Below, one piece after another: positions 244 through 63,175 of a stretch of 64,000 nucleotides of DNA; the stretch's first letter is position 1; every line of letters begins with the position of its first letter. The stretch is taken from the IMG/VR virus record IMGVR_UViG_3300035180_001778, positions 248,001-312,000 of that record. One strand, given 5' to 3'. Below the pieces are notes generated by a model, which was given only the letters and a program-made list of their open reading frames with translations, was not told the DNA's origin and did no database searches. The translations under genes were made by a program, and so were the position numbers.

Positions 244-504
244 ATGACCATGAAACGCAGCAAGTCTCAAGACCGTCTACGCCTTCGAGCGACTCTCCCC
301 CGAGAGCGCCAGGAGACCCTTCTTCCTTGCCCCGCGTGCGCTGGCAACAAGCTCCTCTTGAAAGAGACTCCCGACGGTCTCTACAAGATGAAGCCGTGCC
401 GTTGGTGCGACGGTACAGGAGCGGTTGATCGCATCATTCAGCGCATGTGGGCCCGCTGGACCAAGATGCTCGCGTACAACCGCAACAAGGGTCACTGCGG
501 CTAG
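244..504 (+). CDS. small Cys-rich zinc-finger protein
   Basis: CPACAG and CRWCDGTG (DnaJ-like CxxCxG) motifs. Confidence 0.6.
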   Translation: MTMKRSKSQDRLRLRATLPRERQETLLPCPACAGNKLLLKETPDGLYKMKPCRWCDGTGAVDRIIQRMWARWTKMLAYNRNKGHCG

Positions 505-920
505 TCGTCGTCAGCCAGGAGGTGCTCTTGCCAGGGACGACCCTCTACACGAGGAACATGCGGCCAGAGAAGAGCGAAGACACTCGGGCTGCACGTTGCC
601 TTGCCGATGTCCCCGGTTGTGGCTGCCAACAAGTTCTTCTTCACCACGGCATCCCCATCCGAGTACACCTCTTCGATGTAGTACGCATGGTACAGCATGA
701 CCTTGGGCAAGTTGACTCCAGGTCGCCTCCAGATTTGAAGACGACACAGATCGGGGTGTACACCCCAGTACACCCCCGAAAACATCTTGTTGAGCTTCTC
801 GACTGCCTCAACTCGAAGGGGGGAGTCATAGGGAGTCTGCTCTTCTGGTCTTGAAAGAATGCTCAGAAGCACCCCCGCGCGCTTCGCTTTCTCTGCGTAC
901 TGGACAGGATCTTCGGACAT
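501..920 (-). CDS. hypothetical protein with C-terminal WQEHLLADDD tag
   Basis: ORF; GGTGTA element 10 nt upstream of ATG 920. Confidence 0.6.
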   Translation of the reverse strand: MSEDPVQYAEKAKRAGVLLSILSRPEEQTPYDSPLRVEAVEKLNKMFSGVYWGVHPDLCRLQIWRRPGVNLPKVMLYHAYYIEEVYSDGDAVVKKNLLAATTGDIGKATCSPSVFALLWPHVPRVEGRPWQEHLLADDD

Positions 921-964
921 GAAAAAGGGGTACACCGACCCGAGAGTCAGCGTACCCCTTTCAG

Positions 965-1525
965 TCAGCCCGAGGCCTGGTTCTGCTGGAACCCCACGAG
1001 GAAGGGTTCCCAGAGGTCCGACTTGACGTCATGCCGGATCTGGGGAGCCCCCAACGGCAGAGTCTTCGGAGCGTGCGGATGCGCGATGCCCTTCCACGTT
1101 GCCGGGGGCTTGAGCCTCATGCCCGCTTCTGCCGGCGTGCGACCAGCCTTGCGGCCGTTGCACGGGTAGCAGCTCGTCACGATGTTCTCCCACACCGTCT
1201 TCCCACCCTGGCGCCTCGGAACCACATGGTCGTAGTTCAGGTCCTTCCGCGACTTGGTGGTGCCGCAGTAGCAGCACATGAAGTTGTCGCGAGCGAAGAC
1301 GTTCTCCCGTGAGAACTTGACGCCCCGCTTGCGATACGGGACGACCTTCTTGAGCATGGCGACCGCGGGCATCTTGACGACCTGCCCATCACGCTCGCAG
1401 AGGACCTCGTCGTACTCTTCCAGGATTTGGATTTTGCCGTTGCAGAAGTCGACCATTGCGACCTGCCACGGCACGACTCTGTGTGGGGCCATCCACGAGT
1501 TCAAGATCAGCGTATGCGAGTTCAT
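965..1525 (-). CDS. HNH endonuclease (McrA-like)
   Basis: FSRENVFARDNFMCCYCG, DHVVPRRQGG, WENIVTSCYPCN. Confidence 0.9.
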   Translation of the reverse strand: MNSHTLILNSWMAPHRVVPWQVAMVDFCNGKIQILEEYDEVLCERDGQVVKMPAVAMLKKVVPYRKRGVKFSRENVFARDNFMCCYCGTTKSRKDLNYDHVVPRRQGGKTVWENIVTSCYPCNGRKAGRTPAEAGMRLKPPATWKGIAHPHAPKTLPLGAPQIRHDVKSDLWEPFLVGFQQNQASG

Positions 1526-1577
1526 GGGACACCTTCGTGATGCGCCCCAACTTGGAGCGGCTACCGTTTCAATTGCA

Positions 1578-1654
1578 TGGTGCCCGCCGGGGGATTCGAA
1601 CCCCCAACCTTCCGTTTTTGAGGCGGACGCCGCTGCCAGTTGGGCTAGACGGGC
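1578..1654 (-). tRNA. tRNA-Leu(CAA), short variable loop
   Basis: Loop CT-CAA-AA, encoded CCA. Confidence 0.85.
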
Positions 1655-1708
1655 ATAATACAGGAAGGCCCTGGTTGCGATCAACCAAGGCCTTCCAATT
1701 CGAGAATT

Positions 1709-2060
1709 TGGAGCTGCCGGGAATCGAACCCGGGTCCGCAAAGCTTCCGTTCCGCTTTCGTTTACGTGCGTAGCCGCCATATCCCTGGCGGCTGGGTTCG
1801 CGGATTTGGCCGCGAACTATCTCGTCTGCTTGTCTCGAAGGGGTAGCCGCCGAGCACGCTTCCCCTTCCAGCCCTGTGGGTTGACACCGGAAATCCAGCT
1901 ACTAGGACGATCTTGCTGGCCGATGGTCACTACGCAGCCATCTGCATGGGGACGAGAGCGTTGTCGTTCGCAGGTATACGTCTCGATTGATTACGGCGGG
2001 TCGAGAGCCGCCTACACGCAAGCTGGAACTTCCAATCCACGTCGAAACCAAGTCAGCCCC
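1709..2060 (-). ncRNA. ssrA: tmRNA
   Basis: 5' GGGGCTGACTTGGTTTCGAC, G3.U70 acceptor, 3' T arm, tag ANDNALVPMQMAA then TAG TGA. Confidence 0.95.
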
Positions 2061-2134
2061 GAGTTGTGCTACCGATGAATTGAATCACCTTCGCCCACTA
2101 CTTGGGTGGGTCAAGCGATGGTAGCTCGCTTTCG

Positions 2135-2219
2135 TGCCGTCGACAGGAGTCGAACCTGCCCTCCCTTTCGGGAACATGCACCTCAAGCATGCGCGTCTGC
2201 CAAGATCCGCCACGACGGC
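2135..2219 (-). tRNA. tRNA-Leu(GAG), long variable arm
   Basis: Loop TT-GAG-GT, class II cloverleaf. Confidence 0.9.
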
Positions 2220-2240
2220 CTATCGTACCCAAACCGAGAG

Positions 2241-2323
2241 TGTGTCACCCCGGGATCGAACCGGGCTACCAACGAAGGTCCTGCTTATCAGGCAGGTGTG
2301 GTCAACCAGCTCCCTCGTGACAC
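2241..2323 (-). tRNA. tRNA with GAT (Ile) anticodon and atypical long variable arm
   Basis: CCTGC-CTGATAA-GCAGG; about 14-nt variable region. Confidence 0.7.
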
Positions 2324-2326
2324 ATG

Positions 2327-2473
2327 TGAGGAAAGAGAGAAGGAAAAAGGATGAAACAGAAGCAGGGCGTTTCCGGGCTTCACACCAATTCCGAGGTTCC
2401 TCGGGGTTAAGCGCTTAGAAGGAGGCAGCCACGCTGGGGTTTTACCGTTTGGGGGGTTAGTTCTCTTTCCTCA
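2327..2473 (-). ncRNA. candidate structured RNA
   Basis: Ends pair (TGAGGAAAGAGA / TCTCTTTCCTCA); internal hairpins. Confidence 0.35.
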
Positions 2474-2501
2474 GCCCGGCTTTCACCGGGCCCGGGACCC
2501 G

Positions 2502-3011
2502 CTACTCGAAGAGCGCGGGGTCCAAGTTTTCGATTTCGATCGAAGTGGAGTTCGCCATTCCGATCACGGCCTGGAGGCCGCTGTGCTTCCTTCCAGCCTG
2601 GAGGGCCCGTCCCATCGCCGCCTTGGGCTCGATGGTGGCCACCATGTACTCCGTCCCATCCCCGATGGTGCGGGAATCGGGCATGTAGGAAGTGTCCTTC
2701 TCCTTGATGGCGGACTTCCACATCTTCTGGAGACGACCCATCCCACCAACCCGCTTGATGGCCTCAGCGAGGCTCATGGGCTTCCCGTCGACCGTGACGG
2801 GGACCGCCAGGTTGTACCGCATCTGGGCGGTCTGGAGGACCGCCAGAGCGTCCTCTGCGGTCGAGTACTCCTCGGCGAGGTTGGCGGGCGAGACCGGATC
2901 CTTCTCGGAGGGGTAGGCCTTCAGGGAACCCGAGAACTGCTTCTCGGGCAGCTCCCGGCGAAGCTCCCACATCTTGATCGCATCCCGAAGCTCGAATACA
3001 GTGACCTTCAT
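2502..3011 (-). CDS. helical protein, DIP1984/DUF6847-like
   Basis: LQTAQMRYNL...MSLAEAIK...LQAVIGMANST pattern; family from memory. Confidence 0.55.
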   Translation of the reverse strand: MKVTVFELRDAIKMWELRRELPEKQFSGSLKAYPSEKDPVSPANLAEEYSTAEDALAVLQTAQMRYNLAVPVTVDGKPMSLAEAIKRVGGMGRLQKMWKSAIKEKDTSYMPDSRTIGDGTEYMVATIEPKAAMGRALQAGRKHSGLQAVIGMANSTSIEIENLDPALFE

Positions 3012-3216
3012 TACCATCCTCATCTTCTCGAAGATTTCGTCGAGAAGATGAGGCCAGCTCTCCAGTCTCCCACTCGGTCCCACAGTGATTGCAGGTAGGA
3101 ATGGGAAGATCGTCAGGAACCGGGTAGACCCCTCGACGATACCCGGCTGTGCGACCGGGCCCTGTTGTAGGGGTGACGACCCCAACGCCGCATTCGGCAC
3201 ACTTGAAACTCAACAT
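3008..3216 (-). CDS. YgiT/MqsA-type zinc-finger protein (3' end uncertain, probable frameshift)
   Basis: CAECG...PTCNHCGTEW. Confidence 0.5.
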
Positions 3217-3290
3217 GGTGCGGGGTAGGGGAATCGGACCCCTCTGATCTAGCTTGTCGAGCTAGTGCTCTCCCAGAGAACGAACCCCGC
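3216..3290 (-). tRNA. tRNA-Val(GAC)
   Basis: CTAGC-TCGACAA-GCTAG, CCA; T loop GTCCGA. Confidence 0.8.
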
Positions 3291-3291
3291 A

Positions 3292-3366
3292 TGGTGAGGC
3301 GATTGGGAGTTGAACCCAAGACAGGTTCCTTATCAGAGAACCCAGGTGACCGTACCGTCCCGCCTC
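3292..3366 (-). tRNA. tRNA-Ile(GAT)
   Basis: Loop CT-GAT-AA, CCA. Confidence 0.75.
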
Positions 3367-3622
3367 ATGTTTCTCTTACACCAACTTGGGGGTGAACCTC
3401 AAGTTTTCTTCGTAGTCCGAGGAGGAATTGAACCCCTACACAGCCACCTATAATGAGGCCGACGCCGACCGTACGTCTTAGGGCTCGGCCCAGAAATGCG
3501 TCTCCGGACCCTTGTCGGTGCCGAAGTCGACTTCCCCTGTGGTCGCCTCCAGGTGTTACCTGGCTTCCGCTCAAGGGCTGCAAAGGATCTCACCGGAGTG
3601 ACCCGGGCTCAATCCAGTGCAT

Positions 3623-3697
3623 TGGTACCACGAACGGGAGTCGAACCCGTACCTCTTGCATCTCAGGCAAGTGCCTCTGCCGTTGGGCTACCGTGGC
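3623..3697 (-). tRNA. tRNA-Leu(GAG), short variable loop
   Basis: CTTGC-CTGAGAT-GCAAG, CCA. Confidence 0.85.
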
Positions 3698-3784
3698 ATT
3701 GTATCCGGACCCCATGCAACTGGGGCAACTCACAGGAGGTTGCACTCCAATGAGTCGAGAGTCCCGGATGGCCTCTCGTTTTTC

Positions 3785-3862
3785 TGGTGCTGACGAAGGG
3801 AGTCGAACCCTCACATTGTCTTCCTTCTGAGGGAAGCGCCTCGCCATTTGGGCTACGTCAGC
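3785..3862 (-). tRNA. tRNA-Leu(CAG), short variable loop
   Basis: CTTCC-CTCAGAA-GGAAG, CCA. Confidence 0.85.
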
Positions 3863-4017
3863 GTATTCTCGATCTCTTTCAACTTCATCAAGACCTTGTG
3901 CTTCAAGTTCTGGAGTTCGACCCTCAGAGCGTAGGCCTGAAGCATTTGAGGTCCCTGGAGCTTGTTGATACGCTTCCAGAACTTTTTGGACTTCGGTCCG
4001 CTGTATCGTCTTTTCAT
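3853..4017 (-). CDS. small basic hypothetical protein
   Basis: ORF MKRRYSGPKSKKFW fills a tRNA spacer. Confidence 0.45.
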   Translation of the reverse strand: MKRRYSGPKSKKFWKRINKLQGPQMLQAYALRVELQNLKHKVLMKLKEIENTLT

Positions 4018-4023
4018 CTTGAG

Positions 4024-4097
4024 TGACCACGAAGGGAGTCGAACCCTCAACATTTCGCTTCTAAGGCGAACGCCTCTGCCAGTTGGGCTACGTGGCC
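4024..4097 (-). tRNA. tRNA-Leu(TAG), short variable loop
   Basis: TTCGC-CTTAGAA-GCGAA. Confidence 0.85.
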
Positions 4098-4098
4098 A

Positions 4099-4175
4099 TG
4101 GTACGGGACTAGGGGATCGGACCCTACATTTTCTGCCTTGTGAGAGCAGCGCGTTCACCAGCTCGCTCGTCCCGC
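4099..4175 (-). tRNA. tRNA-Val(CAC)
   Basis: Loop CT-CAC-AA, CCA. Confidence 0.8.
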
Positions 4176-4314
4176 GTTACTTGAATCTCGAACCCAGAAG
4201 AAGACCTCCGCTGCACAATAAATCCCACCCGCCTTGCTTGACGACCAGGTAGCCCCGAGAGAAGGGCATCTCTCGGCATTGCGTCCCTCAAGGGAGGCCT
4301 TCTTCTACGTTCGA

Positions 4315-4388
4315 GGTGACCTCGGAGGGACTCGAACCCTCACACAACCCGCTTTAAGGGGGTCCCTTTGCCTTTTTGGTACGAGGCC
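4315..4388 (-). tRNA. tRNA-Leu(TAA), atypical
   Basis: Loop CT-TAA-AG, weak anticodon stem. Confidence 0.6.
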
Positions 4389-4399
4389 GAAACACTGAA

Positions 4400-4476
4400 T
4401 AGAACCCCGGGTGGGACTTGAACCCACAACAGCCAGCTTCAAAGGATGGCGTCCCTGCCAGTAGGACCCCCGGGGC
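4400..4476 (-). tRNA. tRNA-Gln(TTG)
   Basis: Loop CT-TTG-AA. Confidence 0.7.
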
Positions 4477-4529
4477 AAAGTACCTCTGCTCAGCGTGCTC
4501 ATTCTCCATGAGCATCTCCGAACGAAAGG

Positions 4530-21193: not shown

Positions 21194-21610
21194 ATGGCTC
21201 GCAGCGTCCTACCCTGGTTCGTCTACCTCATTCACAGCGAGTCGACAGGTCACCTCTACGTTGGGGTGACCACCGATCCCACTCGCCGCCTGGCAGAGCA
21301 CAACGGGAAGGGGAAGCGAGGGGCAAGGTACACCCGCAAGGGCCGCCCCTGGATTCGCCTCTACCTGGAATCTGCGATCGACCGCGTAGCCGCCATGAAG
21401 CGAGAATACGCGATCAAGAGGTTCCACCGGCCCAAGAAGTTCGCCCTGGTCGACAGCCCGACGAACATCAACGAGGCCTTCCTCAAAAGTCGTCTCCCAG
21501 CTTCCCCCACGCCGGAGAACGAACCACCGGAGCCTTCGCCTCCTCGTGATCATCCTCCAGCCGGTGAAGCAGCTCCAGGAACAGCGTCGTCGACTTCTGC
21601 TCCGCCGTGA
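21194..21610 (+). CDS. GIY-YIG endonuclease
   Basis: VYLI..LYVGVT..RRLAEHN..GARYTR..EYAIK. Confidence 0.9.
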   Translation: MARSVLPWFVYLIHSESTGHLYVGVTTDPTRRLAEHNGKGKRGARYTRKGRPWIRLYLESAIDRVAAMKREYAIKRFHRPKKFALVDSPTNINEAFLKSRLPASPTPENEPPEPSPPRDHPPAGEAAPGTASSTSAPP

Positions 21611-21735
21611 CTTCCGTGCGTCGTGAAGGAAACGGAGGACCCTCTTCCGATCGCTCCGCTCCAAGCTCTGAAACCATTCAGTCGTTTGCATGGGATGTCT
21701 TACACCATCCCACATGTAGGTGCTAACGATTTCGG

Positions 21736-29719: not shown

Positions 29720-30166
29720 TCAGAAATCGTCGTCCCAGATCACCTCAAACGAGGTCCGGCGGAGGACAGGTACGCGAGAGAATTTGAGAGCTTCTGCCCA
29801 CACCTCTCTCAACCTCTGTGCTGCCTTGGGGTACAGCTCTTCAGCATGATGATCAATGCCCAACCAACTCGAAGATGGGGCTACTCGCCGTAGCAGATCC
29901 AAGTTGGTGCCAATTCGGCACATATACACATTTCCCCATGGCTTCTTCGCAGCCTTGCTTTCAATACGGCGAAGATACATCCCTGTCGTGCCACCGAGTA
30001 TCTTTGCATATTGTGCAGAATGCCCGAAAAGCTGCACGGATACACCCTGTGTCACCATAGACACGGCTTCCACAAGCATGCGCGTCGTACGCCCTGAACC
30101 AGGTCGCGTTTGAACCTCGGGCCAAGGGCGGATCCCCAGAGCAATGCGGACTTCTTCAGGAGTCAC
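29720..30166 (-). CDS. hypothetical protein with C-terminal tag
   Basis: P-loop-like GSGRTT; ends RRTSFEVIWDDDF. Confidence 0.55.
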   Translation of the reverse strand: MTPEEVRIALGIRPWPEVQTRPGSGRTTRMLVEAVSMVTQGVSVQLFGHSAQYAKILGGTTGMYLRRIESKAAKKPWGNVYMCRIGTNLDLLRRVAPSSSWLGIDHHAEELYPKAAQRLREVWAEALKFSRVPVLRRTSFEVIWDDDF

Positions 30167-40020: not shown

Positions 40021-40100
40021 CCTACAAATTGGAGACCCGAGCGATCAACCGAACACAACCAACAAAATCTGGTTGATCCAGGGGACCCCCAAAATGTAGA
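40021..40100. promoter_or_regulatory. divergent pair of GTTGATC-N16-TGTA promoters (example of more than 20 copies)
   Basis: Minus copy 40023-40049, plus copy 40072-40098. Confidence 0.75.
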
Positions 40101-40108
40101 TGACCCCC

Positions 40109-40993
40109 ATGATGAAGACCAGCACGATTGACCCCCGCGTCGAAGAGGCTCAGAAGGTTCTCCAGGACGGAATCGCCGCGCTAGTCGCTGGTGCCGACTG
40201 GAAGAAGTACCTGGAATTTCAAGCGAAATTCCACAACTACTCGCTCTGCAACACCTTCTGGCTGATGGCTCAGGCCATGCGCCGAGGGATCGAGATCAGC
40301 CAGTTCGCCGGGTTCAACACTTGGCGTGACGCGAAGCGCCAGGTCCGCAAGGGCGAGAAGGCGTTCCAGGTGCTCGCCCCCCTTCGCTACAAGCGCGAGG
40401 TCGTGAAGGACGGCACCAAGGAAAACGTATTCGGAATCCGTGGGTTCCGCGTCGCATCAACCTTCGACATCTCGCAGACGGACGGCCCGGCCCTCCCCGA
40501 GATCGTGTCGCAGCTCCAGGGAACGAGCGAGGAGATCGAGGCGGTCTACGCCTCTCTCGTCAAGTTCTCCACGGAGATCAACAAGGTGCCCGTCCGTCGG
40601 GAAGTGCTCCCGGCCGGCACCAACGGGTACTACAGCCGCGAGGGCTTCATCGTGGTGTCGAGCACCATCAGTGGGCTCCAGGCGCTCAAGACGCTGGCTC
40701 ACGAGATCGCCCACTCGATCCTGCACGAGAAGCTGGCCGACTGCCATGACCAGGTGTACCGCGAAGTCGAGGCCGAATCCACGGCCTTCGTGGTGCTCCA
40801 CTCCCTCGGGTTCAGCGCGGAGTCCTACTCCTTCGGGTACGTGGCCGGCTGGTCCAAGGGTGACGCCAAGATCGTCAAGGAGGTCGCCGAGCGTGTCCAG
40901 CGGGCTGCGAAGACCATCCTCGGCTCCCTCGTGAAGCCGAAGACCTGGCAAGAGCACCTCGACGACGACATCCTCGAAGACAAGGCGGCGTGA
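40109..40993 (+). CDS. ArdC-like ssDNA-binding domain plus zincin metallopeptidase
   Basis: FHNYSLCN, GFNTW, RQVRKGEKA, FDISQT, HEIAH, EVEAES. Confidence 0.85.
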   Translation: MMKTSTIDPRVEEAQKVLQDGIAALVAGADWKKYLEFQAKFHNYSLCNTFWLMAQAMRRGIEISQFAGFNTWRDAKRQVRKGEKAFQVLAPLRYKREVVKDGTKENVFGIRGFRVASTFDISQTDGPALPEIVSQLQGTSEEIEAVYASLVKFSTEINKVPVRREVLPAGTNGYYSREGFIVVSSTISGLQALKTLAHEIAHSILHEKLADCHDQVYREVEAESTAFVVLHSLGFSAESYSFGYVAGWSKGDAKIVKEVAERVQRAAKTILGSLVKPKTWQEHLDDDILEDKAA

Positions 40994-46682: not shown

Positions 46683-46895
46683 CTACTCAAGATCGTCGAG
46701 GAGATGCTCCCAGCCGGTCGGTCTCTTGTCCGCCAGCTCTTGGAGCATCCCGATCTGGAATTCTTTCGCTTCTTCCTTCGTGATGTTTCCACTGGCGTAC
46801 TCGTACTCGACGCAGGGACACGAGCGGAACATGATCCGCCCGTTGCAAACGGGGCAGCGGACGGGAGGGCAATTCTTCCGTCCGTCTCGCATCAT
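46683..46895 (-). CDS. small zinc-binding protein with C-terminal tag
   Basis: CPVC..CPC; ends PTGWEHLLDDLE. Confidence 0.55.
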   Translation of the reverse strand: MMRDGRKNCPPVRCPVCNGRIMFRSCPCVEYEYASGNITKEEAKEFQIGMLQELADKRPTGWEHLLDDLE

Positions 46896-48046
46896 AGCTG
46901 CTCCCACACCGTGAGGGCGGGCCGCGGAGCTGCCGCCCACGAAGGGGCCATGGACTCCTCGATGAGCTGCACACAGACCTCTTCCAGGCCCGCACGGTCC
47001 GGTTGCTGCGGGAGGAGGCTGGTCCTCATCAGCTCCGACAGCTCCGCATCCTGAGCCACAGCCCACGACACGAGTTCGTCGTAGGTCCACATCCCAGCTC
47101 GGATCTCCAGAAGCTCAGCAGCATCCGGCTTACGAACGAGTACGCCTTTTCCTGACAGGATTTCACGGCACATCCGGAGAAGCCTGACCAAGTGCATGGC
47201 GTGTTTGGTGTCGTACCCAAACTTCTCTTCCAGAGCGGCCCTTGCCGGGTTCCGGTTCTTCTTCCACTCCTGGTACTGAGACCAGGTCCGATGGGCCGCC
47301 GTGTACCTCCGCTCCTTGTCGAGCAGCTCGATGAAGTTCGTGTCGTACCCGACACTTCGAGCAGCCGCTTGCCAGGTGTTCACTTCGACGTCATCCCAGG
47401 ACCACTTGGTGACCTCCAAGAGACGCTCGGTGAACAGCTCCCGCATGCGGATCCGGGCCGGCTCGTCGAACTCCTCCATGTCCCGCCACCGCCAAGAATC
47501 GAGGACCTTGGTGATGGCAGAGGTTGCCGCTGCGAGCTGGTCGGCGGGGATGACCGTTCGCTCGGGAAGCCCGAACTCGGATCGCAAGGGCTGAGCCTTC
47601 GGGGGATCCTTGAGCCACTTGTAGTGTATGTTGATCCTCTTGAGCTGAGCGGTCGCGTACCCTGAGAACGTGTGTTTGGCCTTCCGCGAGAGGAAGCTGT
47701 CACGCTTCTCCCGGATGCGCTCCCACTCGGGGCTCAGGACCAGGTGATCGCTCGGGTCCGTGTAGAGCAGCTCCAAAACGTTGGGGTTGCAGTCGCACGC
47801 GAGGAGGAAGAACTTCCGGATGTCGAAGATCGTGAAATCCGGCTCGTGTTGCTCCGCTTGCTCGAAACGGTTGTGGGGCTGGAAGCCGAGGTAGTTCACC
47901 TTCGGGGCAATGCAGACCCCACGCAAGTCCAGGTCACTCGTCGGCAAGTTGGTGCCGTAGGCCTGGCTCCCGTGCCGAGTGATGAACAGGGTCCGCTGAG
48001 GAAGCCAGCCGAGGTTGCCCTTGTAGATGTTCCAGTCGAAGCTCAT
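46892..48046 (-). CDS. Pol-beta superfamily nucleotidyltransferase (RlaP/YcgL-like)
   Basis: GSQAYG..SDLDLRG, NPNVLE, YDTKHAMHLVRLL. Confidence 0.88.
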   Translation of the reverse strand: MSFDWNIYKGNLGWLPQRTLFITRHGSQAYGTNLPTSDLDLRGVCIAPKVNYLGFQPHNRFEQAEQHEPDFTIFDIRKFFLLACDCNPNVLELLYTDPSDHLVLSPEWERIREKRDSFLSRKAKHTFSGYATAQLKRINIHYKWLKDPPKAQPLRSEFGLPERTVIPADQLAAATSAITKVLDSWRWRDMEEFDEPARIRMRELFTERLLEVTKWSWDDVEVNTWQAAARSVGYDTNFIELLDKERRYTAAHRTWSQYQEWKKNRNPARAALEEKFGYDTKHAMHLVRLLRMCREILSGKGVLVRKPDAAELLEIRAGMWTYDELVSWAVAQDAELSELMRTSLLPQQPDRAGLEEVCVQLIEESMAPSWAAAPRPALTVWEQL

Positions 48047-48065: not shown

Positions 48066-48764
48066 CTAGAAGCTCTCGTCGAGGTATTCCCACCACGACT
48101 TACGAGGAAGCTGGGGGCCCGAACAAGGGATCCACTTCTCATGGAGATCGCGGCCTTGAATGGTGATCCCTCGTCTGCTCGTGACCCACATGTTCCAATG
48201 TCGAACGATGGCCCGAGTCCCCTCCCAAACGGAAGCTACTTGAGCGTAGATCCGCTCCCTGTTCTTGTCCCGGCGGAAAGCCCACACCCCAGGCTTGCAC
48301 CACTCGGGGATAGGGAGAGGCGGCTTCGGGACATGAATGAGAGGATGCCCACCCTCACGAACGAAGGAGATGTCGCGGAAGTTGATCTCGTCGTCGTAGT
48401 AGACCGCGTGCTCGGTTCGGCCTCGAATACGCAGTTCGGATCCCACACTTGTAGCAAGCTCACGGGAAAAGATCGGGAGCGCCCCATTGGGCAACTGCTC
48501 AACCTGGAAGATGCGTCGAGCAATCCCCTGATAGTCACGCGCTCGGAAGATGGGCGCGGCCATCGATCTGGCTAGGCTACTTCGCCCCTCTGCCGAGTTC
48601 ATGAAGTTGGAGATGATGCTCTCTCGAAGGGACTGATGTAGTTGGGTTCCCACCGCAACAGCGCTGTCCGAGAGCATCCGGAATGGGACTGTGCATCCCA
48701 TCGAGAGACTTCGAGCCGCTGTCTCGAAGTCCATAGCTATCAGCGACACAATTCCCGGAGGCAT
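48066..48764 (-). CDS. hypothetical protein with capsid-like segment and C-terminal tag
   Basis: GRSSLARSM..RDYQGIARRIFQVEQLPNGALP; start uncertain. Confidence 0.5.
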   Translation of the reverse strand: MPPGIVSLIAMDFETAARSLSMGCTVPFRMLSDSAVAVGTQLHQSLRESIISNFMNSAEGRSSLARSMAAPIFRARDYQGIARRIFQVEQLPNGALPIFSRELATSVGSELRIRGRTEHAVYYDDEINFRDISFVREGGHPLIHVPKPPLPIPEWCKPGVWAFRRDKNRERIYAQVASVWEGTRAIVRHWNMWVTSRRGITIQGRDLHEKWIPCSGPQLPRKSWWEYLDESF

Positions 48765-49708: not shown

Positions 49709-49738
49709 GTCTTGGGGGATCGGTGTAAGATCCCCAAG

Positions 49739-50002
49739 ATGGACAAGATGCGCGTCGTGCCATGGCAATCCGTCCGAGACGGATCGGTGTCCTGGAAGGC
49801 GGTCAAGTGTAGAAGGTGTCACGTCTGGGACGGAACCTCCTACGCGGGCCAGCCCGAAGGGCCTGAGCTAGCCATCATCAAGCTCGAAGATCACTTCCTG
49901 GAGATGCAGTGCCGGGCCACGCTCTTCGATGGCAAGTGGGAGTTCCTGTGGAACTTGCATCTGTTCCTGTGGGCCCCGAAGACGGCTTGGGAACAGCTCT
50001 AA
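49739..50002 (+). CDS. hypothetical protein with C-terminal tag
   Basis: Ends PKTAWEQL. Confidence 0.55.
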   Translation: MDKMRVVPWQSVRDGSVSWKAVKCRRCHVWDGTSYAGQPEGPELAIIKLEDHFLEMQCRATLFDGKWEFLWNLHLFLWAPKTAWEQL

Positions 50003-56056: not shown

Positions 56057-56311
56057 TCAAGAAAAGATATCGTCTTCGAGTAGGACTGTCCAAGCGGTCG
56101 GCCTGTGGGTTCTGTCCCACTCCCACAAAAGCTTGAGGTCGAGGTGAATGGGCTGGAAGCCCTGCTTGTCCCGCTGCTTGCTGACGAAGAAGCTCATCGT
56201 GCTGGAGGACGGCATGGGGGTGTCTCGATGTAGACGGACCACCATTGAGGTGTCGTACAAGATCGAGGCACCGCCCGGAATGCGGTCATTCTGGTTAGGC
56301 ACCGATCTCAT
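56057..56311 (-). CDS. hypothetical protein with C-terminal tag
   Basis: Ends PTAWTVLLEDDIFS. Confidence 0.55.
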   Translation of the reverse strand: MRSVPNQNDRIPGGASILYDTSMVVRLHRDTPMPSSSTMSFFVSKQRDKQGFQPIHLDLKLLWEWDRTHRPTAWTVLLEDDIFS

Positions 56312-56567
56312 CCTCTTTCAAGATTACAGCCCAAGCCGTCGTAGACTTCTTGAGTGGCTTCTTGGGCTTACCTCTTCTCGGGAGGAGGTAAACGAAACCC
56401 CCTCGGGGTCCACCTCCAGGAAGCCGTTGAAGCTCCTTGCTTTGGCAAAGGAGCCTGAGACATGAAGACACGGACGCGACGTTCCCGCCGATGTGCCTTG
56501 CGATCTCTGTGGCGGTCCAACCTTCATGGACTGCCACAGAAGCCAGGATGTCGGTCCGGATGCTCAC
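56295..56567 (-). CDS. winged-HTH protein with C-terminal tag
   Basis: TATEIARHIG..SVSSCLRLL; ends TTAWAVILKEDE. Confidence 0.6.
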   Translation of the reverse strand: MSIRTDILASVAVHEGWTATEIARHIGGNVASVSSCLRLLCQSKELQRLPGGGPRGGFVYLLPRRGKPKKPLKKSTTAWAVILKEDEIGA

Positions 56568-56913: not shown

Positions 56914-58320
56914 TTGAACCACAAAACGACCACCCGAAAGATCACGATGCCCGAAGGTAACCCCCAACTCTGTGAGATTTGGGAGACATCCGATGCCCTG
57001 CGAGGATCGACAATCCGTTGTGTTGTCGGTGATGTAGCTCCGAACGCCATCACGTTCGTGAGCCTGGCAGGGAACCGTACGCGCATCCCGGCGATCCGCA
57101 TGGCCGGCTGGCATTTCGTGCAGAGCCCTCCCCCCAATCTGATGTCCTGCTCGCGTCGTGGGTGCCGCCTCCCGGGGCTTCTACGTTTCGAGCGAGGGAT
57201 AACCCCCGAATGGGTCTGCGCTCGGCACATGCCCGTTGGAACCCGAGCCACGCTCGACCTCGTGCCGCGTCCCAACCAAGACCCTCCCACTCTCGAAACC
57301 CCGATCATCATCTGCGCCGCCTGTGAGGGTGACAACCCCGTCCAGGATGCGAACGTTCTCATTGGTCGGGACGACATCGAGATGTGGTTCTGCCAGCGGT
57401 GCAACAACGTCTGGGGGATCGTTCTCGAAGAGAACACGCGCGACAGGGCTGTACCGCTTACATCGCGTGAACTCGCCACATGGTACAGCTCCCGAGTGCG
57501 GCTCCTCGTGGAAGCCATGGAACGGGGCGGCCGACACCCGACCCATGTCGAGGTGTCGGCGACTGTGTGGACTTTGCTGTATGATGCACACAACGAAGCC
57601 ACTTTCATGTTGTACGGGATTCCTGCCCGGCGAGTCCTGGACTTTCTATCTCCAGACACTCGGCGCGCAATGGTGACGTTGCAGACTCGGGACGCGATTC
57701 GCTCGGCGGCTCTTCCTGTGTCGCGGCTCGGCAGCGTCCCGAACCGCTCTCCAGAGATCACGGGCAATAACCCGCTCCTGACCTGGGTTCAGGAGCAACG
57801 CACCATTCGAGCCCTCCCTCAGCCGACCCCTATGCCCCCTCCCGAGAAGACAGTCAGGTTGGAAGAACAGATGGGGATCCCTACGATGGGGTCCACATGG
57901 GTCAACCGTGGGACTGGGGTGCTCATCGAGGTGACGGGCCTATCGTTTGCCGAAGGCACACAACAGATCATTCAGTTCAGAGCCGTTCTGGTGGCTGAAT
58001 CGAATATCCGAGAACCTCACTCGCGTCTTGGCTATGATGACTTCGTCACGCTGCATCGCGTCTGGCACAACGACGGAAAGACCGAGATGCCCTACTTGGA
58101 CCTCGGTCTACAGCTCGGCGACGAATGGATTCAGAACCATAATCGGGTCGTGGTCGAGATCCTGCACATCGACCACAAGAAGGAGACCGTCTCGGTCTAC
58201 GAGAAAGACACGAAACGTCGCTCCGCCCTGAAGATGCGAGAGTTCGCACCTGGCGGTAACTGGCGGAAGATCGTCCGTCGCACGGCCTTTGAAGCCCTGG
58301 AGGATGACGACTTCGGCTGA
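56914..58320 (+). CDS. multidomain hypothetical protein with zinc ribbons and C-terminal tag
   Basis: 468-aa ORF; ends RRTAFEALEDDDFG. Confidence 0.7.
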   Translation: MNHKTTTRKITMPEGNPQLCEIWETSDALRGSTIRCVVGDVAPNAITFVSLAGNRTRIPAIRMAGWHFVQSPPPNLMSCSRRGCRLPGLLRFERGITPEWVCARHMPVGTRATLDLVPRPNQDPPTLETPIIICAACEGDNPVQDANVLIGRDDIEMWFCQRCNNVWGIVLEENTRDRAVPLTSRELATWYSSRVRLLVEAMERGGRHPTHVEVSATVWTLLYDAHNEATFMLYGIPARRVLDFLSPDTRRAMVTLQTRDAIRSAALPVSRLGSVPNRSPEITGNNPLLTWVQEQRTIRALPQPTPMPPPEKTVRLEEQMGIPTMGSTWVNRGTGVLIEVTGLSFAEGTQQIIQFRAVLVAESNIREPHSRLGYDDFVTLHRVWHNDGKTEMPYLDLGLQLGDEWIQNHNRVVVEILHIDHKKETVSVYEKDTKRRSALKMREFAPGGNWRKIVRRTAFEALEDDDFG

Positions 58321-58321
58321 G

Positions 58322-58570
58322 CTACTCGAAGTCCACGTCGAGCTGGTCGAGCAGGGTCTTCCTCGGCGGCTTAGCAGTGGATCGCCAAGTGTCGGTTTGG
58401 GGGAGATCCGCTTCGAATACCGTACCCGCACCGAAGACTCGTTTGACCTTGCCTCCTTTGATCGTGCATTCCACGACCTGTGCCGAGGAGCCATTGACCG
58501 TCAGCACGTAATACAACTTGCCGTCGGGGCTCTTGTAGACAGTCTTGGGCTTGATCTCGTCTTTGGGCAT
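58322..58570 (-). CDS. hypothetical protein with C-terminal tag
   Basis: Ends RKTLLDQLDVDFE. Confidence 0.55.
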   Translation of the reverse strand: MPKDEIKPKTVYKSPDGKLYYVLTVNGSSAQVVECTIKGGKVKRVFGAGTVFEADLPQTDTWRSTAKPPRKTLLDQLDVDFE

Positions 58571-59955: not shown

Positions 59956-60201
59956 GGGATACTCCTGAAGTTGCGGGATCGGACCCAGAGAGAGCGGCCC
60001 TCGAAGCGGACGACCATGTTGCAGTCGAAGAGCATCTGGACTTTCTCCACACACCCTTCCCGGCCCGCCAAGATCGGAACCCCGATGATCACGAGGGGAT
60101 TTGGGGTTCCAAGACAATCTTGGTGCGCGACGACACGATCGCCTACTTGAAACGGGCTGGCTTCTCTCATCCCAGGCTATACAGGCCGACCCCGAAGGCG
60201 A

Positions 60202-61842
60202 TCAACCTTCTGCGGGCTTCTTGGGCTTCTTGGGCTTCTTCTTCCCCAGCTTCTTGGCTTCCTTCTCTTTTTCCTTCCGATCCCATTCGCGGGACTCCGC
60301 CCGGTCCACCTTGTCCCGCTCCCGACGCTCCTTGACGGGCCCCATCGTCAGCTTGTAGAGCTTCCCCAAGAACTTCCGGTGCGCCTCCCACTCCCCACAC
60401 TGAGGCCCCTTGTAGGAGCTGGGATGCCAGATGTACCGCACCTCGGACAGGACACTCTGGATGAGTGCCAGCTCACCCATGGAGTTGAGGTAGTCGGTCA
60501 CCTCTTCCTCCGTGAGCGTCTGCTTGAGCATGAGCTGCCAGTGCGTGTTCAGCCCCGCGCAGGAAATCGAGGGGTTCTTGCTGATCATGTAGGAGATCGG
60601 GTTGAACTTGCACTCCAGAGCATCCTCCATGAAGATGCGGCTCGTCAGCCAGTACGCCGCACTCTCGCGCATGCCCTCCAGCTTCGACTTGTCGGCTTCA
60701 TCGCCCTTGGCCTCCAGCTCAGCGATCTCCGCCTGACGCCGGGCATTCGATTCGTCCGCTTCCGCTTGAGCCTTCTTGCAGAAGTCCCACGCCTCCCGAG
60801 CGGCATTGTGGTAGGCCTCGACGTCGGACATGACCCTCTTGTACCCCGGCCCGTAGGTCTCGACCTTCGTGCCGGTGAGAGCTTGCCAGACATCCTCCCG
60901 GATCATGGCCTGGAGGATCGGAAACGTCTTGGGGCGCTTGGACTCCGACATCAGGGAGAAGTCGTGCCCCTGTTGCGTCTTCGTTCCCATCTTCGGACGG
61001 ATGTTGAGTTCCCCGTCCACCATGGCACGATCCGTCCCACACGCGAGCATCACCGCGTATCGACGACGGAGCTTCTTCGCGAGGACCTGGAGCATCTTCT
61101 TCGTCTCCTCGCCTCGCATGTACCCGCCGCAGCGGACCCGGATCTCACCGTGGCGGATCTGGTCGACGATGAAGCCGTACTGCACGTTGCCGAGCTTCAG
61201 CGGGACAACTCCCGTGTCGCTCTCCATGGCAGCATCCGCAGCTTCATCTTCAGCGAAGTCCGCAGCTTCTTCCTCTTCGGTCCGATCCTTGGTATGCAGA
61301 CCGTTGCCCTGACGCTTCCGATTCCGAGCCTCGCGAAGATCCTCGTGTTTTTTCAGGAGGGTCGCATCGGCCATCGTGATCGTCAGCCCCGCCGTACGGA
61401 TGATGTTCTCCACACGTCGCAGCGTCGGGATGCCCTTGGGAATCACGCTCTTGGGCATGAAGCTGAACTTGGGGCGCTTCCGTTCGAGGTCTCGGACCTC
61501 GATGTGGCACTCTTGCGTTGCATCGAGCAGCTCGTCGAAGGCCATTCCCTTCCTGGCGGGGACATCGTGAACGGTGTTGTCCCCGAGGCCCTTCTCGACC
61601 AGGTCAAGCTTGAACGCATCGAGCCACAGCCGTTGGATCGAGGGGTCTTTACAGTCCTCGATCGAGCCGTAGTCGTTGTACTCCGCACGGATAGGCGGAG
61701 TACGGATGTACCACTCCTCCGCCCCATTGGCGTAGTCCCCTCTCTCGCTGAAGGGGCTCGCTTGGAGCAGGATATAGCGGACGGGGTCTCCGGCACCGAT
61801 CGGCAACCCCGAGACGCAGCATGTGTAGTCGAATGATCCCAT
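60202..61842 (-). CDS. hypothetical phage protein
   Basis: MGSFDYTCCVSGLPI..YNDYG..GPQ. Confidence 0.75.
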   Translation of the reverse strand: MGSFDYTCCVSGLPIGAGDPVRYILLQASPFSERGDYANGAEEWYIRTPPIRAEYNDYGSIEDCKDPSIQRLWLDAFKLDLVEKGLGDNTVHDVPARKGMAFDELLDATQECHIEVRDLERKRPKFSFMPKSVIPKGIPTLRRVENIIRTAGLTITMADATLLKKHEDLREARNRKRQGNGLHTKDRTEEEEAADFAEDEAADAAMESDTGVVPLKLGNVQYGFIVDQIRHGEIRVRCGGYMRGEETKKMLQVLAKKLRRRYAVMLACGTDRAMVDGELNIRPKMGTKTQQGHDFSLMSESKRPKTFPILQAMIREDVWQALTGTKVETYGPGYKRVMSDVEAYHNAAREAWDFCKKAQAEADESNARRQAEIAELEAKGDEADKSKLEGMRESAAYWLTSRIFMEDALECKFNPISYMISKNPSISCAGLNTHWQLMLKQTLTEEEVTDYLNSMGELALIQSVLSEVRYIWHPSSYKGPQCGEWEAHRKFLGKLYKLTMGPVKERRERDKVDRAESREWDRKEKEKEAKKLGKKKPKKPKKPAEG

Positions 61843-62776
61843 GACCATCTAGTACACCAGTGACCCCCAAATTGGGGGTCACTGGTGGATCTTATCGGTC
61901 GGGATGGCCCACACCGAAACACCGCGAAAACGAGCAATGAGACGCTCGTTCAACGTCGCCACTCCAAGAGACCCCAGGAACGAACTCTCATCCGTCGGGG
62001 TCTGGCCTAGAAAGACCAGGAAGCCGTTGGACGTGTCATCCGTGAATGCCGTGACGTCACCCTGCGTACGGAAGGTATTCAGCGTCAGGGTGATGGCTCG
62101 GAAGGACTCCCACTCGACGCGGCAATCATCGAGCATTTAGATATGGTCCTGGGAGAGGGTCGGGGTATCCATGCCCCTCCTACAACTCCAAGTATATCAG
62201 GACCAACCGTTCTCGGGAGGCAACCTCGCTTTTCTCCGAGCTTCCGCGCGTTCGTGTATGCGGGCTTCTCGTTCGTCGTTGATCTCGTTCAAGCACTTCC
62301 AGAGGAAGTGCTTGAACGAGATCCCGGCGAGCCACTCCAGGCCCGCGTAGCCGTAGTGATAGACGGCTACGACCAAGCCCACGGTGAAAACGAACAGGAG
62401 AATCAGGGGACGGTTCATCCCGCCAGTTTACACCGGGAGGTTCTCTTCCGTGTAGCGGAATTCCTCGCGCACCCTCATGGAAGAGGTGAACGCCGGCAAG
62501 ACGGCCATCACCCACATCATCTGGTGCATCCCGGCTTTCCCTTTGGCGCAGGACTTCTTGAAGATACAGGCAGACGCGCCCTTGCCGCGTTGCTCGATGA
62601 TACAGCCACAGGGGAACGTGTACTTTTTCATGGGGATTACCTGAACAAAATAGCGAAAGGACGATCCGTTGGGCGCTCAGATGGGGGGACATCGAGCTGC
62701 CGGGGGTCGTCCCTTCATCTATCTAGTACACCACGGACATCTGAACTTGAACAGAAATCGTCCGAGGCGATTCGAA

Positions 62777-63175
62777 TCACAGCTCGTCGTCGAGGCGGTC
62801 CCAGGCAGCTCGCGGGCCGTTGAGTTCCGCTTTGATCTTGTCCGTCCGCACCGCAATCTCATCGAGTCGGGCCTGAAGGTTCTCCGCTCTACGGTCAAAG
62901 TCCTCCAACCTCTCATCGAGAGGTTCTGTGGGAGTCTCCAGAACCGGCGGGGCAGGGATGGCGCAGTAGTGGGGCTGGACACGGGGCCACCACTTCACAT
63001 TCTCGTGTTTGGCGGCCAACCCGACAGTACATTCGTGGCACTGCCACCCATCTCTTCGAGTGTGCTTGTAGTATTCAGCACGCTGTTTCACCCGGGCGAT
63101 ATCCTCGTAGCGCCCGTATGCCCAGGTGCCAAACCATCCCAGAAGGAACACCCCCAACACAATGACGAGATACAT
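62777..63175 (-). CDS. membrane-anchored protein with C-terminal tag
   Basis: N-terminal TM; ends PRAAWDRLDDEL. Confidence 0.6.
   Translation of the reverse strand: MYLVIVLGVFLLGWFGTWAYGRYEDIARVKQRAEYYKHTRRDGWQCHECTVGLAAKHENVKWWPRVQPHYCAIPAPPVLETPTEPLDERLEDFDRRAENLQARLDEIAVRTDKIKAELNGPRAAWDRLDDEL

Follow-up and report, generated by a model that had tools for sequence, protein, structure and literature searches.

About one in ten proteins encoded by a huge phage of roughly 350 kb, almost all of them small and of unknown function, end in the same short peptide. Related huge phages carry the same tag in their own "dialects", T-A-W-E-x-L-L-D-D, [ST]-R-F-[DE]-R-..-[VP]-[LI]-COOH (type II) and L-W-D-H-L (type III), which points to one shared, co-evolving binding partner, as yet unidentified. 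The tag is best explained as a modular docking peptide for such a receptor, a reading that is given a probability of roughly 0.78. It was first noticed in a sequence-only reading of a 64,000-nucleotide window (positions 248,001 to 312,000 of IMG/VR record IMGVR_UViG_3300035180_001778), which listed about 13 unrelated proteins with a shared C-terminus. That observation is confirmed, and the phenomenon is much larger than was reported: the tag is not confined to the window or to this phage but forms a clade-wide system with at least three dialects.

Occurrence and position of the tag

All 13 C-terminal peptides of the sequence-only reading are present, with correct stop-side coordinates. A 17-column position matrix, anchored on the Leu of W-x-x-L, was scanned over all six frames of the whole 350,469-bp record (referred to as G000). 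The scan gave 40 hits of at least 15 bits within 13 residues of a stop codon, against 1 hit in 446,340 internal positions, and the motif is essentially absent from the other reading frames. The scores are bimodal, with real tags scoring 17 to 36 and noise scoring below 8. The matrices were trained on the genomes on which they were scored, and the independent controls are therefore of more weight. A set of 79 unrelated phage loci (1.16 Mb, 14,544 ORFs) gave one marginal hit, while Tunturiibacter phage Tunturi_5 and 400 kb of LR745208 gave none. A 90%-identical relative, G001, gave 24 C-terminal hits and 1 internal hit. Shuffled tails and N-termini gave far fewer matches, even with a loose regular expression, and reversed-pattern controls gave 0 to 7 hits against 32 to 57. 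The record holds about 39 credible carriers, on both strands, of which 14 lie in the window (Table 1). Two further copies of the tag lie at N-termini, in g6 and in the g32 kinase.

Carriers in the window

Of the protein identities proposed by the sequence-only reading, the ArdC-like and nucleotidyltransferase (RlaP) assignments are correct. The helix-turn-helix assignment, however, rests on a sub-threshold Pfam hit, and the "membrane proteins" amount to one carrier with an N-terminal transmembrane anchor. The ORF ending at 46683 was listed as an overlapping gene of 135 amino acids, but is really a zinc-ribbon protein of roughly 70 amino acids. One carrier in the window had not been listed (21483-21677).

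Table 1 Tagged genes in the 64,000-nucleotide window (coordinates are window positions; scores are from the position matrix; G003, L036 and L120 are other genomes with tagged carriers)
Position (strand)	Protein	C-terminal tail	Score (bits)	Remarks
501..935 (-)	144-aa ORFan	EGRPWQEHLLADDD	26.0	No Pfam or PHROG hit
21483..21677 (-)	64-aa ORF	VRSPAWGKLGDDF	20.6	Not in the sequence-only reading; gene call uncertain
29720..30166 (-)	148-aa ORFan	LRRTSFEVIWDDDF	22.7	No family hit
40100..40993 (+)	ArdC-like protein (ArdcN plus M78 peptidase), 297 aa	KPKTWQEHLDDDIL	34.9	PF08401, 1.4e-14; tag inserted before the family's usual ...AA end; all 119 homologues elsewhere lack the tag
46683..46895 (-)	Cys-rich zinc-ribbon protein, roughly 70 aa	KRPTGWEHLLDDLE	33.3	Listed ORF runs to 47090; likely start MMRDG... 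lies just after the RlaP stop
46892..48046 (-)	RlaP-family nucleotidyltransferase, 384 aa	ALTVWEQL	17.7	PF10127, 1.5e-21; core-only tag at the very end; G003 orthologue ends GGDRFSHILGDDK
48066..48677 (-)	203-aa carrier, N-terminus resembling the N-terminus of the major head protein	PRKSWWEYLDESF	27.6	phrog_2522, 5e-07; orthologues in G003, L036 and L120 tagged in their own dialects
49712..50002 (+)	96-aa ORFan	APKTAWEQL	21.5	Core-only tag at the very end
56057..56311 (-)	84-aa ORFan	HRPTAWTVLLEDDIFS	34.8	Peptide used for docking
56295..56567 (-)	90-aa basic protein, weak helix-turn-helix hit	KSTTAWAVILKEDEIGA	28.7	Terminase_5, E = 0.005, below the curated cut-off
56914..58320 (+)	468-aa ORFan	VRRTAFEALEDDDFG	29.3	Similar 462-aa carrier in L120 ends VRRTAFEHIMDDEF
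58322..58570 (-)	82-aa ORFan	PRKTLLDQLDVDFE	22.4	Leu replaces the aromatic residue
59167..60117 (-)	316-aa basic ORFan	IQPTAWEALLVEDL	26.2	
62777..63175 (-)	132-aa protein with N-terminal transmembrane anchor	GPRAAWDRLDDEL	22.0	C-terminal tail inferred cytoplasmic

Selection, modularity and dialects

Synonymous codons vary at every conserved residue of the tag, with Thr, Leu, Ala, Glu and Asp each using several codons in the tag columns, so selection acts on the peptide and not on the DNA. Across 22 orthologue pairs of G000 and G001 the tag is 89.7% identical, while the linker is 66.6% and the protein body 69.4% identical. In one pair the body is only 35% identical while the tag is identical at 14 of 14 positions. 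The carriers are mutually unrelated by BLASTP, apart from one zinc-ribbon pair, and almost all lack family matches; none of 85 type II carriers has a Pfam hit. The modular nature of the tag is illustrated by the ArdC-like protein, an acquired gene onto which the tag was grafted, and by the copies at N-termini. The tag sits on a tail predicted to be disordered, after a linker mildly enriched in Pro, Lys and Arg. In the AlphaFold2 model of carrier g96 residues 1-150 fold, while residues 151-172 have pLDDT values below 50.

The consensus drifts in concert across lineages. Each dialect marks 40 to over 70 proteins, packed in co-oriented arrays of small genes. In type II the Arg is invariant in 87 of 87 tags, and 50 of 87 end exactly 3 residues after the anchor. 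Type III (L-W-D-H-L) occurs 39, 44 and 10 times against 0 to 2 times in controls, and was read directly at 12 C-termini in a 7.5-kb array. Orthologous carriers switch dialect with their genome: orthologues of five G000 carriers keep the tag in the dialect of the other genome.

Proposed role of the tag

The sequence-only reading suggested a phage-wide docking, localisation, packaging or degradation signal. This interpretation is partly supported: the tag is a phage-wide functional peptide signal on unrelated proteins, neither chance nor a DNA repeat, but the data do not decide among these four functions. It is proposed here that the tag is a modular short linear docking motif. Its conserved core, [S/T]-x-aromatic-[D/E]-x-[L/I], has the sequence pattern of a helix capping box followed by an amphipathic turn, usually followed by acidic residues and a hydrophobic last residue. 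In this view the tag would fold on binding into a groove of one receptor, which is specified by the phage or is specific to the host of the lineage, and which co-evolves with the tag. The tag would thereby bring dozens of otherwise unrelated accessory proteins to the same machine. The carriers are mostly small, fast-evolving and often zinc-ribbon proteins, encoded in long co-oriented arrays outside the structural and replication blocks.

The analysis itself demonstrates the enrichment at termini, selection at the peptide level, the predicted disorder of the tail, the modular grafting onto an acquired gene and the concerted change of dialect with retention on orthologues. Binding as such, the helix-in-groove mode, the existence of a single receptor and the early or accessory nature of the gene arrays are, in contrast, inferences. 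The isolated tail is predicted without helix, and the helical binding mode is thus inferred only from the capping-box pattern. A scan for sigma-70-type promoters was uninformative with respect to the timing of expression. Clade-specific candidate receptors are encoded by the phage, namely a beta-clamp (g256), a clamp loader and an AAA ATPase (g130). The clamp was found in all five clade genomes tested and the AAA ATPase in all nine tested, while both are absent from the two tag-free relatives. However, phyletic subtraction leaves about 75 core genes with the same presence and absence pattern as the tag, and co-occurrence does not single out any receptor.

Candidate receptors and other explanations

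The candidate receptors can only be ranked subjectively, and a receptor other than those discussed below remains about as likely as any of them. Placed first, though tentatively, is the clade-specific Ycf46-like classical AAA ATPase g130 (atlas score 0.99, TM 0.89 to Ycf46 clusters). The outcome would be remodelling, unfolding or hand-over to proteolysis. The carriers may be substrates, giving timed unfolding or removal of an early proteome, or adaptors that tether their bound host targets to the machine, as the SspB XB peptide does for ClpX or the poxvirus PRANC/F-box does for SCF. Genome G006 carries a stand-alone copy of the g130 N-domain inside the tagged gene arm. Terminal, disordered, modular peptides at either end are typical handles for AAA machines, and a membrane-anchored carrier and small, fast-evolving binder-like domains fit the adaptor reading. 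A plain degron should be under weak selection on each carrier, yet the tag is the best-conserved part of each one, which favours the adaptor version over the degron version. Against this candidate, there is no evidence of binding, no partner protease was identified, its phyletic pattern is shared with the other core genes mentioned above, and the phage's own tmRNA tag (ANDNALVPMQMAA) is quite different.

Somewhat less likely, the tag may be a capsid-loading peptide that binds the interior of the HK97-fold procapsid (the major head protein g226, or the scaffold), as encapsulin targeting peptides do, so that dozens of accessory or anti-defence proteins are packaged and co-injected with the DNA. 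The carrier with the clearest function is the ArdC-like anti-restriction protein that acquired the tag, and it lies in an island with a SAM lyase, DNA methylases and a DarB-like methylase-helicase. Co-injection would suit such proteins, by analogy with P1 Dar and T4 IPI. The tagged carrier g337 has a domain like the N-terminus of the major head protein, and the major head protein is 90-94% identical across genomes whose median core identity is 48%. However, no tagged gene lies in the structural block of any genome examined, one carrier is membrane-anchored, and LR745208 has an 82%-identical head protein but no tags in the 400 kb scanned. The head protein hardly changes while the tag changes dialect, with 17 mostly conservative substitutions. 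Moreover, the consensus is unlike that of encapsulins, and 70 or more different cargo species would be unprecedented.

A host hub is a possible receptor that is ranked lower still; a host-encoded receptor cannot be excluded, since the hosts are unknown. It appears unlikely that the tag is a sliding-clamp-binding epitope for the beta-clamp g256, on the T4 gp45 paradigm. The phage does encode a DnaN-like clamp and a clamp loader. The only polymerase found is a family A enzyme, with no DnaE or PolB found, and the clamp may therefore serve other clients. Carriers with recognisable domains are nucleic-acid related (ArdC, zinc ribbons and a nucleotidyltransferase). On the other hand, the DNA polymerase, ligase, helicases and nucleases lack the tag, while in T4 the polymerase carries the motif. 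Tagging 9-14% of the proteome would be far beyond any known clamp clientele in a phage, one carrier is membrane-anchored, and the motif does not match QL[SD]LF. Docking of the clamp dimer with a 20-residue tag peptide, the only direct test of binding that was run, scored 0.00, a score that is no evidence either way. Finally, although the genes are tightly packed, so that regulatory DNA could overlap 3' ends, and the genome is rich in acidic codons, a by-product of a repeated DNA element at gene 3' ends (a promoter, terminator or recombination site), or of chance and amino acid composition, is refuted by the codon and frame analyses.

Comparison with known systems

The clamp-binding epitopes of the T4 family, at the C-termini of gp43, gp33 and gp55 and binding gp45, are likewise short hydrophobic and acidic peptides at the extreme C-terminus of unrelated phage proteins, joined by a poorly conserved linker and modular or interchangeable, and in both cases the phage encodes its own clamp and loader (PMC2988020). 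T4 has only three such proteins named in that review, including the polymerase, while here 40 to over 70 proteins per genome carry the tag but the polymerase and other replisome proteins do not. The clamp here is DnaN-like and not gp45-like, and its binding of the tag is hypothetical.

The targeting or cargo-loading peptides of Family 1 encapsulins are also short C-terminal, occasionally N-terminal, peptides that define a set of otherwise unrelated cargo, their receptor being an HK97-fold shell protein (PMC8346489). The tail that carries the tag described here is predicted to be disordered. The consensus is unrelated (SDGSLGIGSLKRS versus T-A-W-E-x-L-L-D-D and its dialects). Encapsulin cargo genes sit next to the shell gene and number one to a few, while the carriers here are far from the head genes and number dozens, and their packaging is hypothetical.

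By analogy, the adaptor-tether and degron peptides of AAA+ proteases (SspB XB peptide, ssrA tag) and the MIT-MIM type recognition by classical AAA ATPases share with the present system a folded domain, a flexible linker and a short terminal peptide that docks, here by inference, to a single AAA machine, and a clade-specific classical AAA ATPase is encoded here. There is no sequence similarity, the tag ends acidic-hydrophobic rather than in LAA, no protease partner is known, and known bacterial systems tag few proteins by genome-encoded peptides. The poxvirus ankyrin/PRANC (F-box-like) gene families offer a further analogy: both are large families of fast-evolving viral accessory proteins, clustered in variable genome arms and sharing one conserved C-terminal module that plugs them, here putatively, into a common machine. 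PRANC is a folded domain of about 40-50 residues that binds host Skp1, while the element shared here, whose partner is as yet unidentified, is a linear motif of 10-14 residues on N-terminal parts that are unrelated to each other.

Characteristics of the phage genome

The window comprises positions 248001-312000 of a single virus record of 350,469 bp. The record has a GC content of 0.60 and is rated 73 % complete by CheckV. It represents a huge tailed phage. The record encodes a family A DNA polymerase, a DnaB-like helicase and NAMPT, as well as a RecD/Dda-like helicase, an NAD-dependent ligase, a ribonucleotide reductase, GroEL, a UvsX-like recombinase, a clamp loader and a large terminase. 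Furthermore, Mre11/Rad50-like proteins, a Toprim primase, a protein with two sigma region 4 domains (g248), a portal (g235), a prohead protease, a 293-aa major head protein (g226, phrog_2522), two scaffold candidates (g227 and g228) and a DnaN-like sliding clamp were found. The record harbours 40 tRNAs, 36 of which form an array in the window, and within this array lies a phage-encoded tmRNA with the tag peptide ANDNALVPMQMAA.

No close annotated relatives were found among GenBank phages by DNA comparison. Comparison of the major head protein yielded only an unannotated 485-kb metagenomic phage (82 % identity), Tunturiibacter (Acidobacteriota) phage Tunturi_5 (48 %) and Bacillus phage G (39 %). 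The cultured relatives found, Tunturi_5 and Bacillus phage G, are distant; no cultured member carrying the tag turned up, and Tunturi_5 lacks it. The head protein is 92, 90 and 82 % identical to those of the complete huge-phage genomes G003 and G006 and of LR745208, respectively, while the median identity of the 128 core proteins shared with G003 and G006 is about 48 %, that of portal about 65 % and that of terminase about 60 %. This reflects either unusual constraint or recent exchange.

Several further features of the record (here designated G000) and of related genomes are located in the table below. An anti-restriction-looking island in the window holds two N6/N4 DNA methylases, a 1330-aa methyltransferase plus SNF2/DEAD helicase with P1 DarB-like architecture, and a SAM lyase-like protein; of these and the ArdC-like protein, only the ArdC-like protein is tagged. 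Many ArdC-like proteins from unrelated elements end in ...AA (EAA, LAA, KAA, VAA), as does the homologue of this phage (EDKAA), which may be a family-wide ssrA-like C-terminal signal separate from the tag. A PurZ-like adenylosuccinate-synthetase homologue (phrog_1211) lies directly upstream of a kinase carrying an N-terminal copy of the tag, which hints at 2-aminoadenine (Z) DNA. A 323-aa protein ending in DDRDDDDDDD lies directly downstream of a 641-aa vWA (CoxE-like) protein. In a tag-free 350-kb relative (locus L037) an 86-aa protein ends in ...EPFDPEADIPF, resembling the bacterial SSB C-terminal tip, and may be an SSB-tail mimic. Finally, ARAGORN calls a tRNA with anticodon UCA (tRNA-SeC), possibly a UGA-decoding or suppressor tRNA. 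About 20 of the 32 type I tagged genes with a readable stop end in TGA, a count not set against genome-wide stop usage; read-through of such stops would bury the tag.

Locations of features in the window, the whole record (G000) and related genomes
Feature	Location	Strand
tmRNA	window 1709-2060	-
Array of 36 tRNA genes	window 81-17701	-
Protein ending in an acidic run	G000 260419-261390 (window 12419-13390)	-
vWA (CoxE-like) protein	window 13396-15321	
Anti-restriction-looking island	window 21736-36559	
ArdC-like gene	window 40100-40993	
...AA ending of the ArdC-like protein (homologues P0002-P0120)	window 40979-40993	
GHKL/HExxH protein g341	window 50727-52055	+
tRNA with anticodon UCA	window 54161-54233	+
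PurZ-like homologue	G000 19295-21552 (locus L002:848-3102)	-
Major head protein g226	G000 190469-191350 (locus L011:5972-6850)	-
Stand-alone paralogue of the AAA ATPase N-terminal domain	G006:C1:14523-15179	+
Two longer ORFs with internal type III motif	locus L279 (G009:164001-171500), e.g. 4298-4837 and 2831-3721	+
Protein with SSB-like tip	locus L037 14098-14358	+

Occurrence of the C-terminal tag

The sequence-only reading had listed 13 unrelated proteins in the window sharing a C-terminal tag. All 13 peptides were found in the positions it reported, and the observation is confirmed and greatly extended. A position matrix anchored on the Leu of W-x-x-L was used to scan every stop-to-stop ORF of at least 40 aa in all six frames. 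Scores are bimodal: about 40 ORFs score 15 to 36 bits and the rest below 8. At 15 bits or more there are 40 hits within 13 residues of a stop (71,008 positions) and one hit in 446,340 internal positions. This single internal hit lies near the N-terminus of a kinase, g32, and a weaker copy forms the first 18 residues of protein g6. After removal of four probable shadow ORFs about 39 carriers remain, 14 of them in the window. Outgroups are clean: 1.16 Mb of unrelated ArdC-bearing phage contigs gave one hit of 14.6 bits, while Tunturi_5 and 400 kb of LR745208 gave none. De novo spaced-triad enrichment at the C-termini of greedy ORF sets was too noisy in these high-GC genomes.

The type I consensus is [K/R]-[R/P]-[P/K]-T-[A]-W-[E/D]-x-L-[L/D]-[D/E]-D-D-[L/I/F]. 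The Thr-to-Leu distance is fixed and Trp is located one or two residues after Thr. In the tag columns Thr is encoded by ACC, ACG, ACA and ACT, and Leu by CTC, CTT, CTG, TTG and CTA; Ala, Glu and Asp likewise vary. The motif is absent from the other frames.

The carriers are mutually unrelated by all-against-all BLASTP, apart from one pair sharing a zinc ribbon, so that they do not form one paralogous family. Pfam and PHROG annotation was almost entirely blank. Pfam recognized only an ArdC-like protein (ArdcN plus M78), an RlaP nucleotidyltransferase, two Topo-I-type zinc-ribbon proteins and a sub-threshold helix-turn-helix, and PHROGs added only a major-head-protein-like N-terminus in carrier g337. 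One carrier has an N-terminal membrane anchor. No carrier lies in the structural block (about 95-232 kb) and no replisome protein is tagged. A sigma-70-type promoter scan of tagged versus structural regions was uninformative.

The tag is modular and strongly selected. The 119 homologues of the ArdC-like protein from other elements lack the tag, while the protein of this phage has it inserted just before the usual ...AA ending of the family. In G001, a 275-kb relative about 90 % identical in DNA, 24 proteins are tagged, seven of them absent from G000. Over 22 orthologous pairs the last 14 residues are 89.7 % identical, the preceding 16 residues 66.6 % and the rest 69.4 %, and in some pairs the tag is intact while the body is only 35-46 % identical. 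An AlphaFold2 model of carrier g96 shows a predicted folded beta domain (residues 1-150) and a tail (residues 151-172) with pLDDT below 50 and no secondary structure. The linker preceding the tag is mildly enriched in Pro, Lys and Arg in type I, and strongly in Pro in type II.

Tag dialects in related huge phages

More distant relatives were reached with a conserved neighbour gene, g341, encoding a 442-aa protein with a GHKL-ATPase N-box (ExxxNxxD) and a C-terminal HExxH. This protein has no Pfam hit, has 336 homologues on contigs of up to 600 kb, and is 45-65 % conserved in over 300 huge-phage contigs, making it a good marker for this clade. Type I tags occur in genomes with 49-65 % g341 identity (L036, L120, L121 and L122). 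Exact degenerate DNA patterns for type I tags had too low a coverage and information content to be useful in IMG/VR.

Two complete genomes of 407 and 435 kb (G003 and G006) carry a second dialect, P-P-x-[S/T]-R-F-[D/E]-R-[E/D]-[E/D]-[V/P]-[L/I]-COOH (type II). Arg is invariant in 87 of 87 tags, and 50 of 87 end exactly three residues after the anchor. In G006, 71 of 504 called genes are tagged, making up 21 of 45 genes in 380-400 kb and 25 of 60 in 0-40 kb, while none lie in the 120-260-kb structural and replication block. A degenerate DNA pattern confirmed enrichment in the genomes G003, G005 and G006, with 32, 17 and 57 hits against 7, 2 and 3 in reversed controls. A stricter pattern picked out further jumbo contigs in IMG/VR, including ones of 512 kb and 228 kb. 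None of 85 type II carriers has a Pfam match.

The type III dialect, x-L-W-D-H-L-(acidic), occurs 39, 44 and 10 times in the genomes G008, G009 and G007, against 0 to 2 in controls. In a 7.5-kb stretch of G009, 12 of about 15 co-oriented small genes end in ...LWDHL.., and many of them encode Cys-rich zinc-ribbon proteins. Two longer ORFs at this locus carry the motif internally (..HDLWDHLMEEQ.., ..ATLFDHLRGL..) and may be gene fusions, read-through products or mis-joined ORFs.

Orthologues of the same carriers are tagged in the dialect of whichever genome they are in. This holds for the DUF3268 zinc ribbon, g96, RlaP, g337 and g433, and for g96 across seven lineages.

Proposed role of the tag and candidate receptors

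Dozens of independent tags in one genome share the dialect of that genome, and orthologues switch dialect with the genome. The simplest explanation is a single binding partner whose specificity drifts, with all tags tracking it. The conserved core [S/T]-x-aromatic-[D/E]-x-[L/I], preceded by Pro, matches a helix capping box followed by an amphipathic turn. It is therefore inferred that the peptide folds on binding into a groove, with acidic or terminal-hydrophobic residues adding contacts, although the isolated tail is predicted to be disordered. The terminal enrichment, the selection on the peptide, its modularity and the concerted change of dialect were read from the sequences themselves, whereas the shared partner and the mode of binding are inferred, and any binding to a clamp, AAA machine or shell is hypothetical. 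Each tag is the most conserved part of its protein, so the function of each carrier seems to depend on docking. This argues against a plain degron and favours recruitment to a machine, whether as cargo, client or adaptor. The proposal of the sequence-only reading, a phage-wide signal for docking, localization, packaging or degradation, was partly supported: the data agree with a phage-wide signal but do not assign it a specific function.

Phyletic subtraction with the tag-free relatives Tunturi_5 and LR745208, which are too distant for this purpose, left about 75 core genes sharing the presence and absence pattern of the tag, and consequently no receptor was singled out. A tentative candidate is the Ycf46-like classical AAA ATPase g130. 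It is a core gene in the nine clade genomes tested and is missing, like the clamp and the tag, from Tunturi_5 and LR745208. G006 has a stand-alone paralogue of its N-terminal domain (27 % identity over residues 5-221) inside its densest tagged gene array.

A capsid receptor is possible but less likely than not. It is supported by the close formal analogy with encapsulin targeting peptides (PMC8346489), the anti-restriction context of the window, the head-protein-like N-terminus of carrier g337 and the anomalous 90-94 % conservation of the head protein. It is weakened by the membrane-anchored carrier, by the absence of tags in the 400 kb scanned of LR745208 despite an 82 %-identical head protein, and by the position of the tagged genes away from the head genes. 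In its most far-reaching form, which is considered unlikely but is not excluded, the tag would be a viral cargo-loading peptide, the phage counterpart and possibly the evolutionary source of encapsulin targeting peptides. It would load dozens of small, fast-evolving anti-defence and takeover proteins into the huge capsid, and the phage would then inject a ready-made protein arsenal with its DNA, with each lineage keeping its own dialect of tag and shell.

The sliding clamp is a more doubtful candidate. The phage has its own clamp and loader, but the polymerase and other replisome proteins are untagged. Docking of the tag on the phage beta-clamp dimer gave a score of 0.00, a value that is no evidence for or against binding. 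Chance or amino-acid composition is rejected by the positional, frame, shuffle and outgroup controls, and a repeated DNA element overlapping gene ends by the use of several synonymous codons at every conserved residue and by the frame and terminus specificity of the motif.

Huge phages are mostly genetic dark matter. Here 9 % to at least 14 % of the predicted proteins, nearly all without any family assignment, are tied together by one short peptide that, in this view, plugs into a common partner, which provides a direct experimental handle. Identification of the partner, expected among about 128 core proteins, would assign a shared pathway to hundreds of unknown proteins across a clade of 230-510-kb phages. 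The three dialects with orthologous carriers form a natural co-evolution experiment for finding the receptor and, if orthogonal, could serve as portable targeting tags. Capsid loading, delivery to an AAA machine or tethering to a clamp would each be a new principle of phage cell biology at this scale. Terminal docking or targeting peptides as such are known, but full-text literature searches revealed no description of this motif, and as far as could be found its scale is new, with at least three co-evolving dialects.

Comparison with known terminal peptides

Unlike ssrA-like C-terminal degrons, which have a non-polar extreme C-terminus (..LAA / ..AA) recognized by ClpX or ClpA, the tags end in acidic residues followed by Leu, Ile or Phe, or in acidic residues alone, and the tmRNA of the phage itself encodes ANDNALVPMQMAA. 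The tag also differs from the SSB C-terminal tip (DDDIPF), an acidic run ending in Pro-Phe at the free C-terminus of an OB-fold SSB. No PF00436 match was found anywhere in the record, the carriers are unrelated proteins, and the last residue is variable in type I, while type II often ends in [DE][DE][VP][LI], which is only reminiscent of the SSB tip. The consensus of the bacterial beta-clamp-binding motif, QL[SD]LF or QLxLxL, is not matched either: there is no conserved Gln, and the hydrophobic spacing is i, i+3, (i+4), with Trp or Phe first.

The sliding-clamp-binding C-terminal epitopes of the T4 type (PMC2988020) are, like the tag, short hydrophobic and acidic peptides at the extreme C-terminus of unrelated proteins, behind a divergent linker; here the linker is less conserved than the tag and the tail is predicted to be disordered. 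The phage encodes a DnaN-like protein, g256 (atlas 0.95, TM 0.76-0.85), and a clamp loader, g250 (phrog_5846, 3e-52). However, the replicative polymerase does not carry the epitope. The family A polymerase g133 ends in ...HLSDGQYLPSS, and no hit of 7 bits or more occurs in any replisome protein except a weak 9.9-bit internal match in helicase g140.

Encapsulin Family 1 targeting peptides (PMC8346489) are short terminal peptides on a disordered extension of unrelated cargo proteins, and the tag agrees with this description, including its N-terminal copies. The logos of types I, II and III, however, share nothing with the encapsulin consensus resembling SDGSLGIGSLKRS / TVGSL. Furthermore, encapsulin cargo genes are adjacent to the HK97-fold shell gene, while no carrier lies between about 95 and 232 kb in G000, the region harbouring the major head protein gene, or between 120 and 260 kb in G006.
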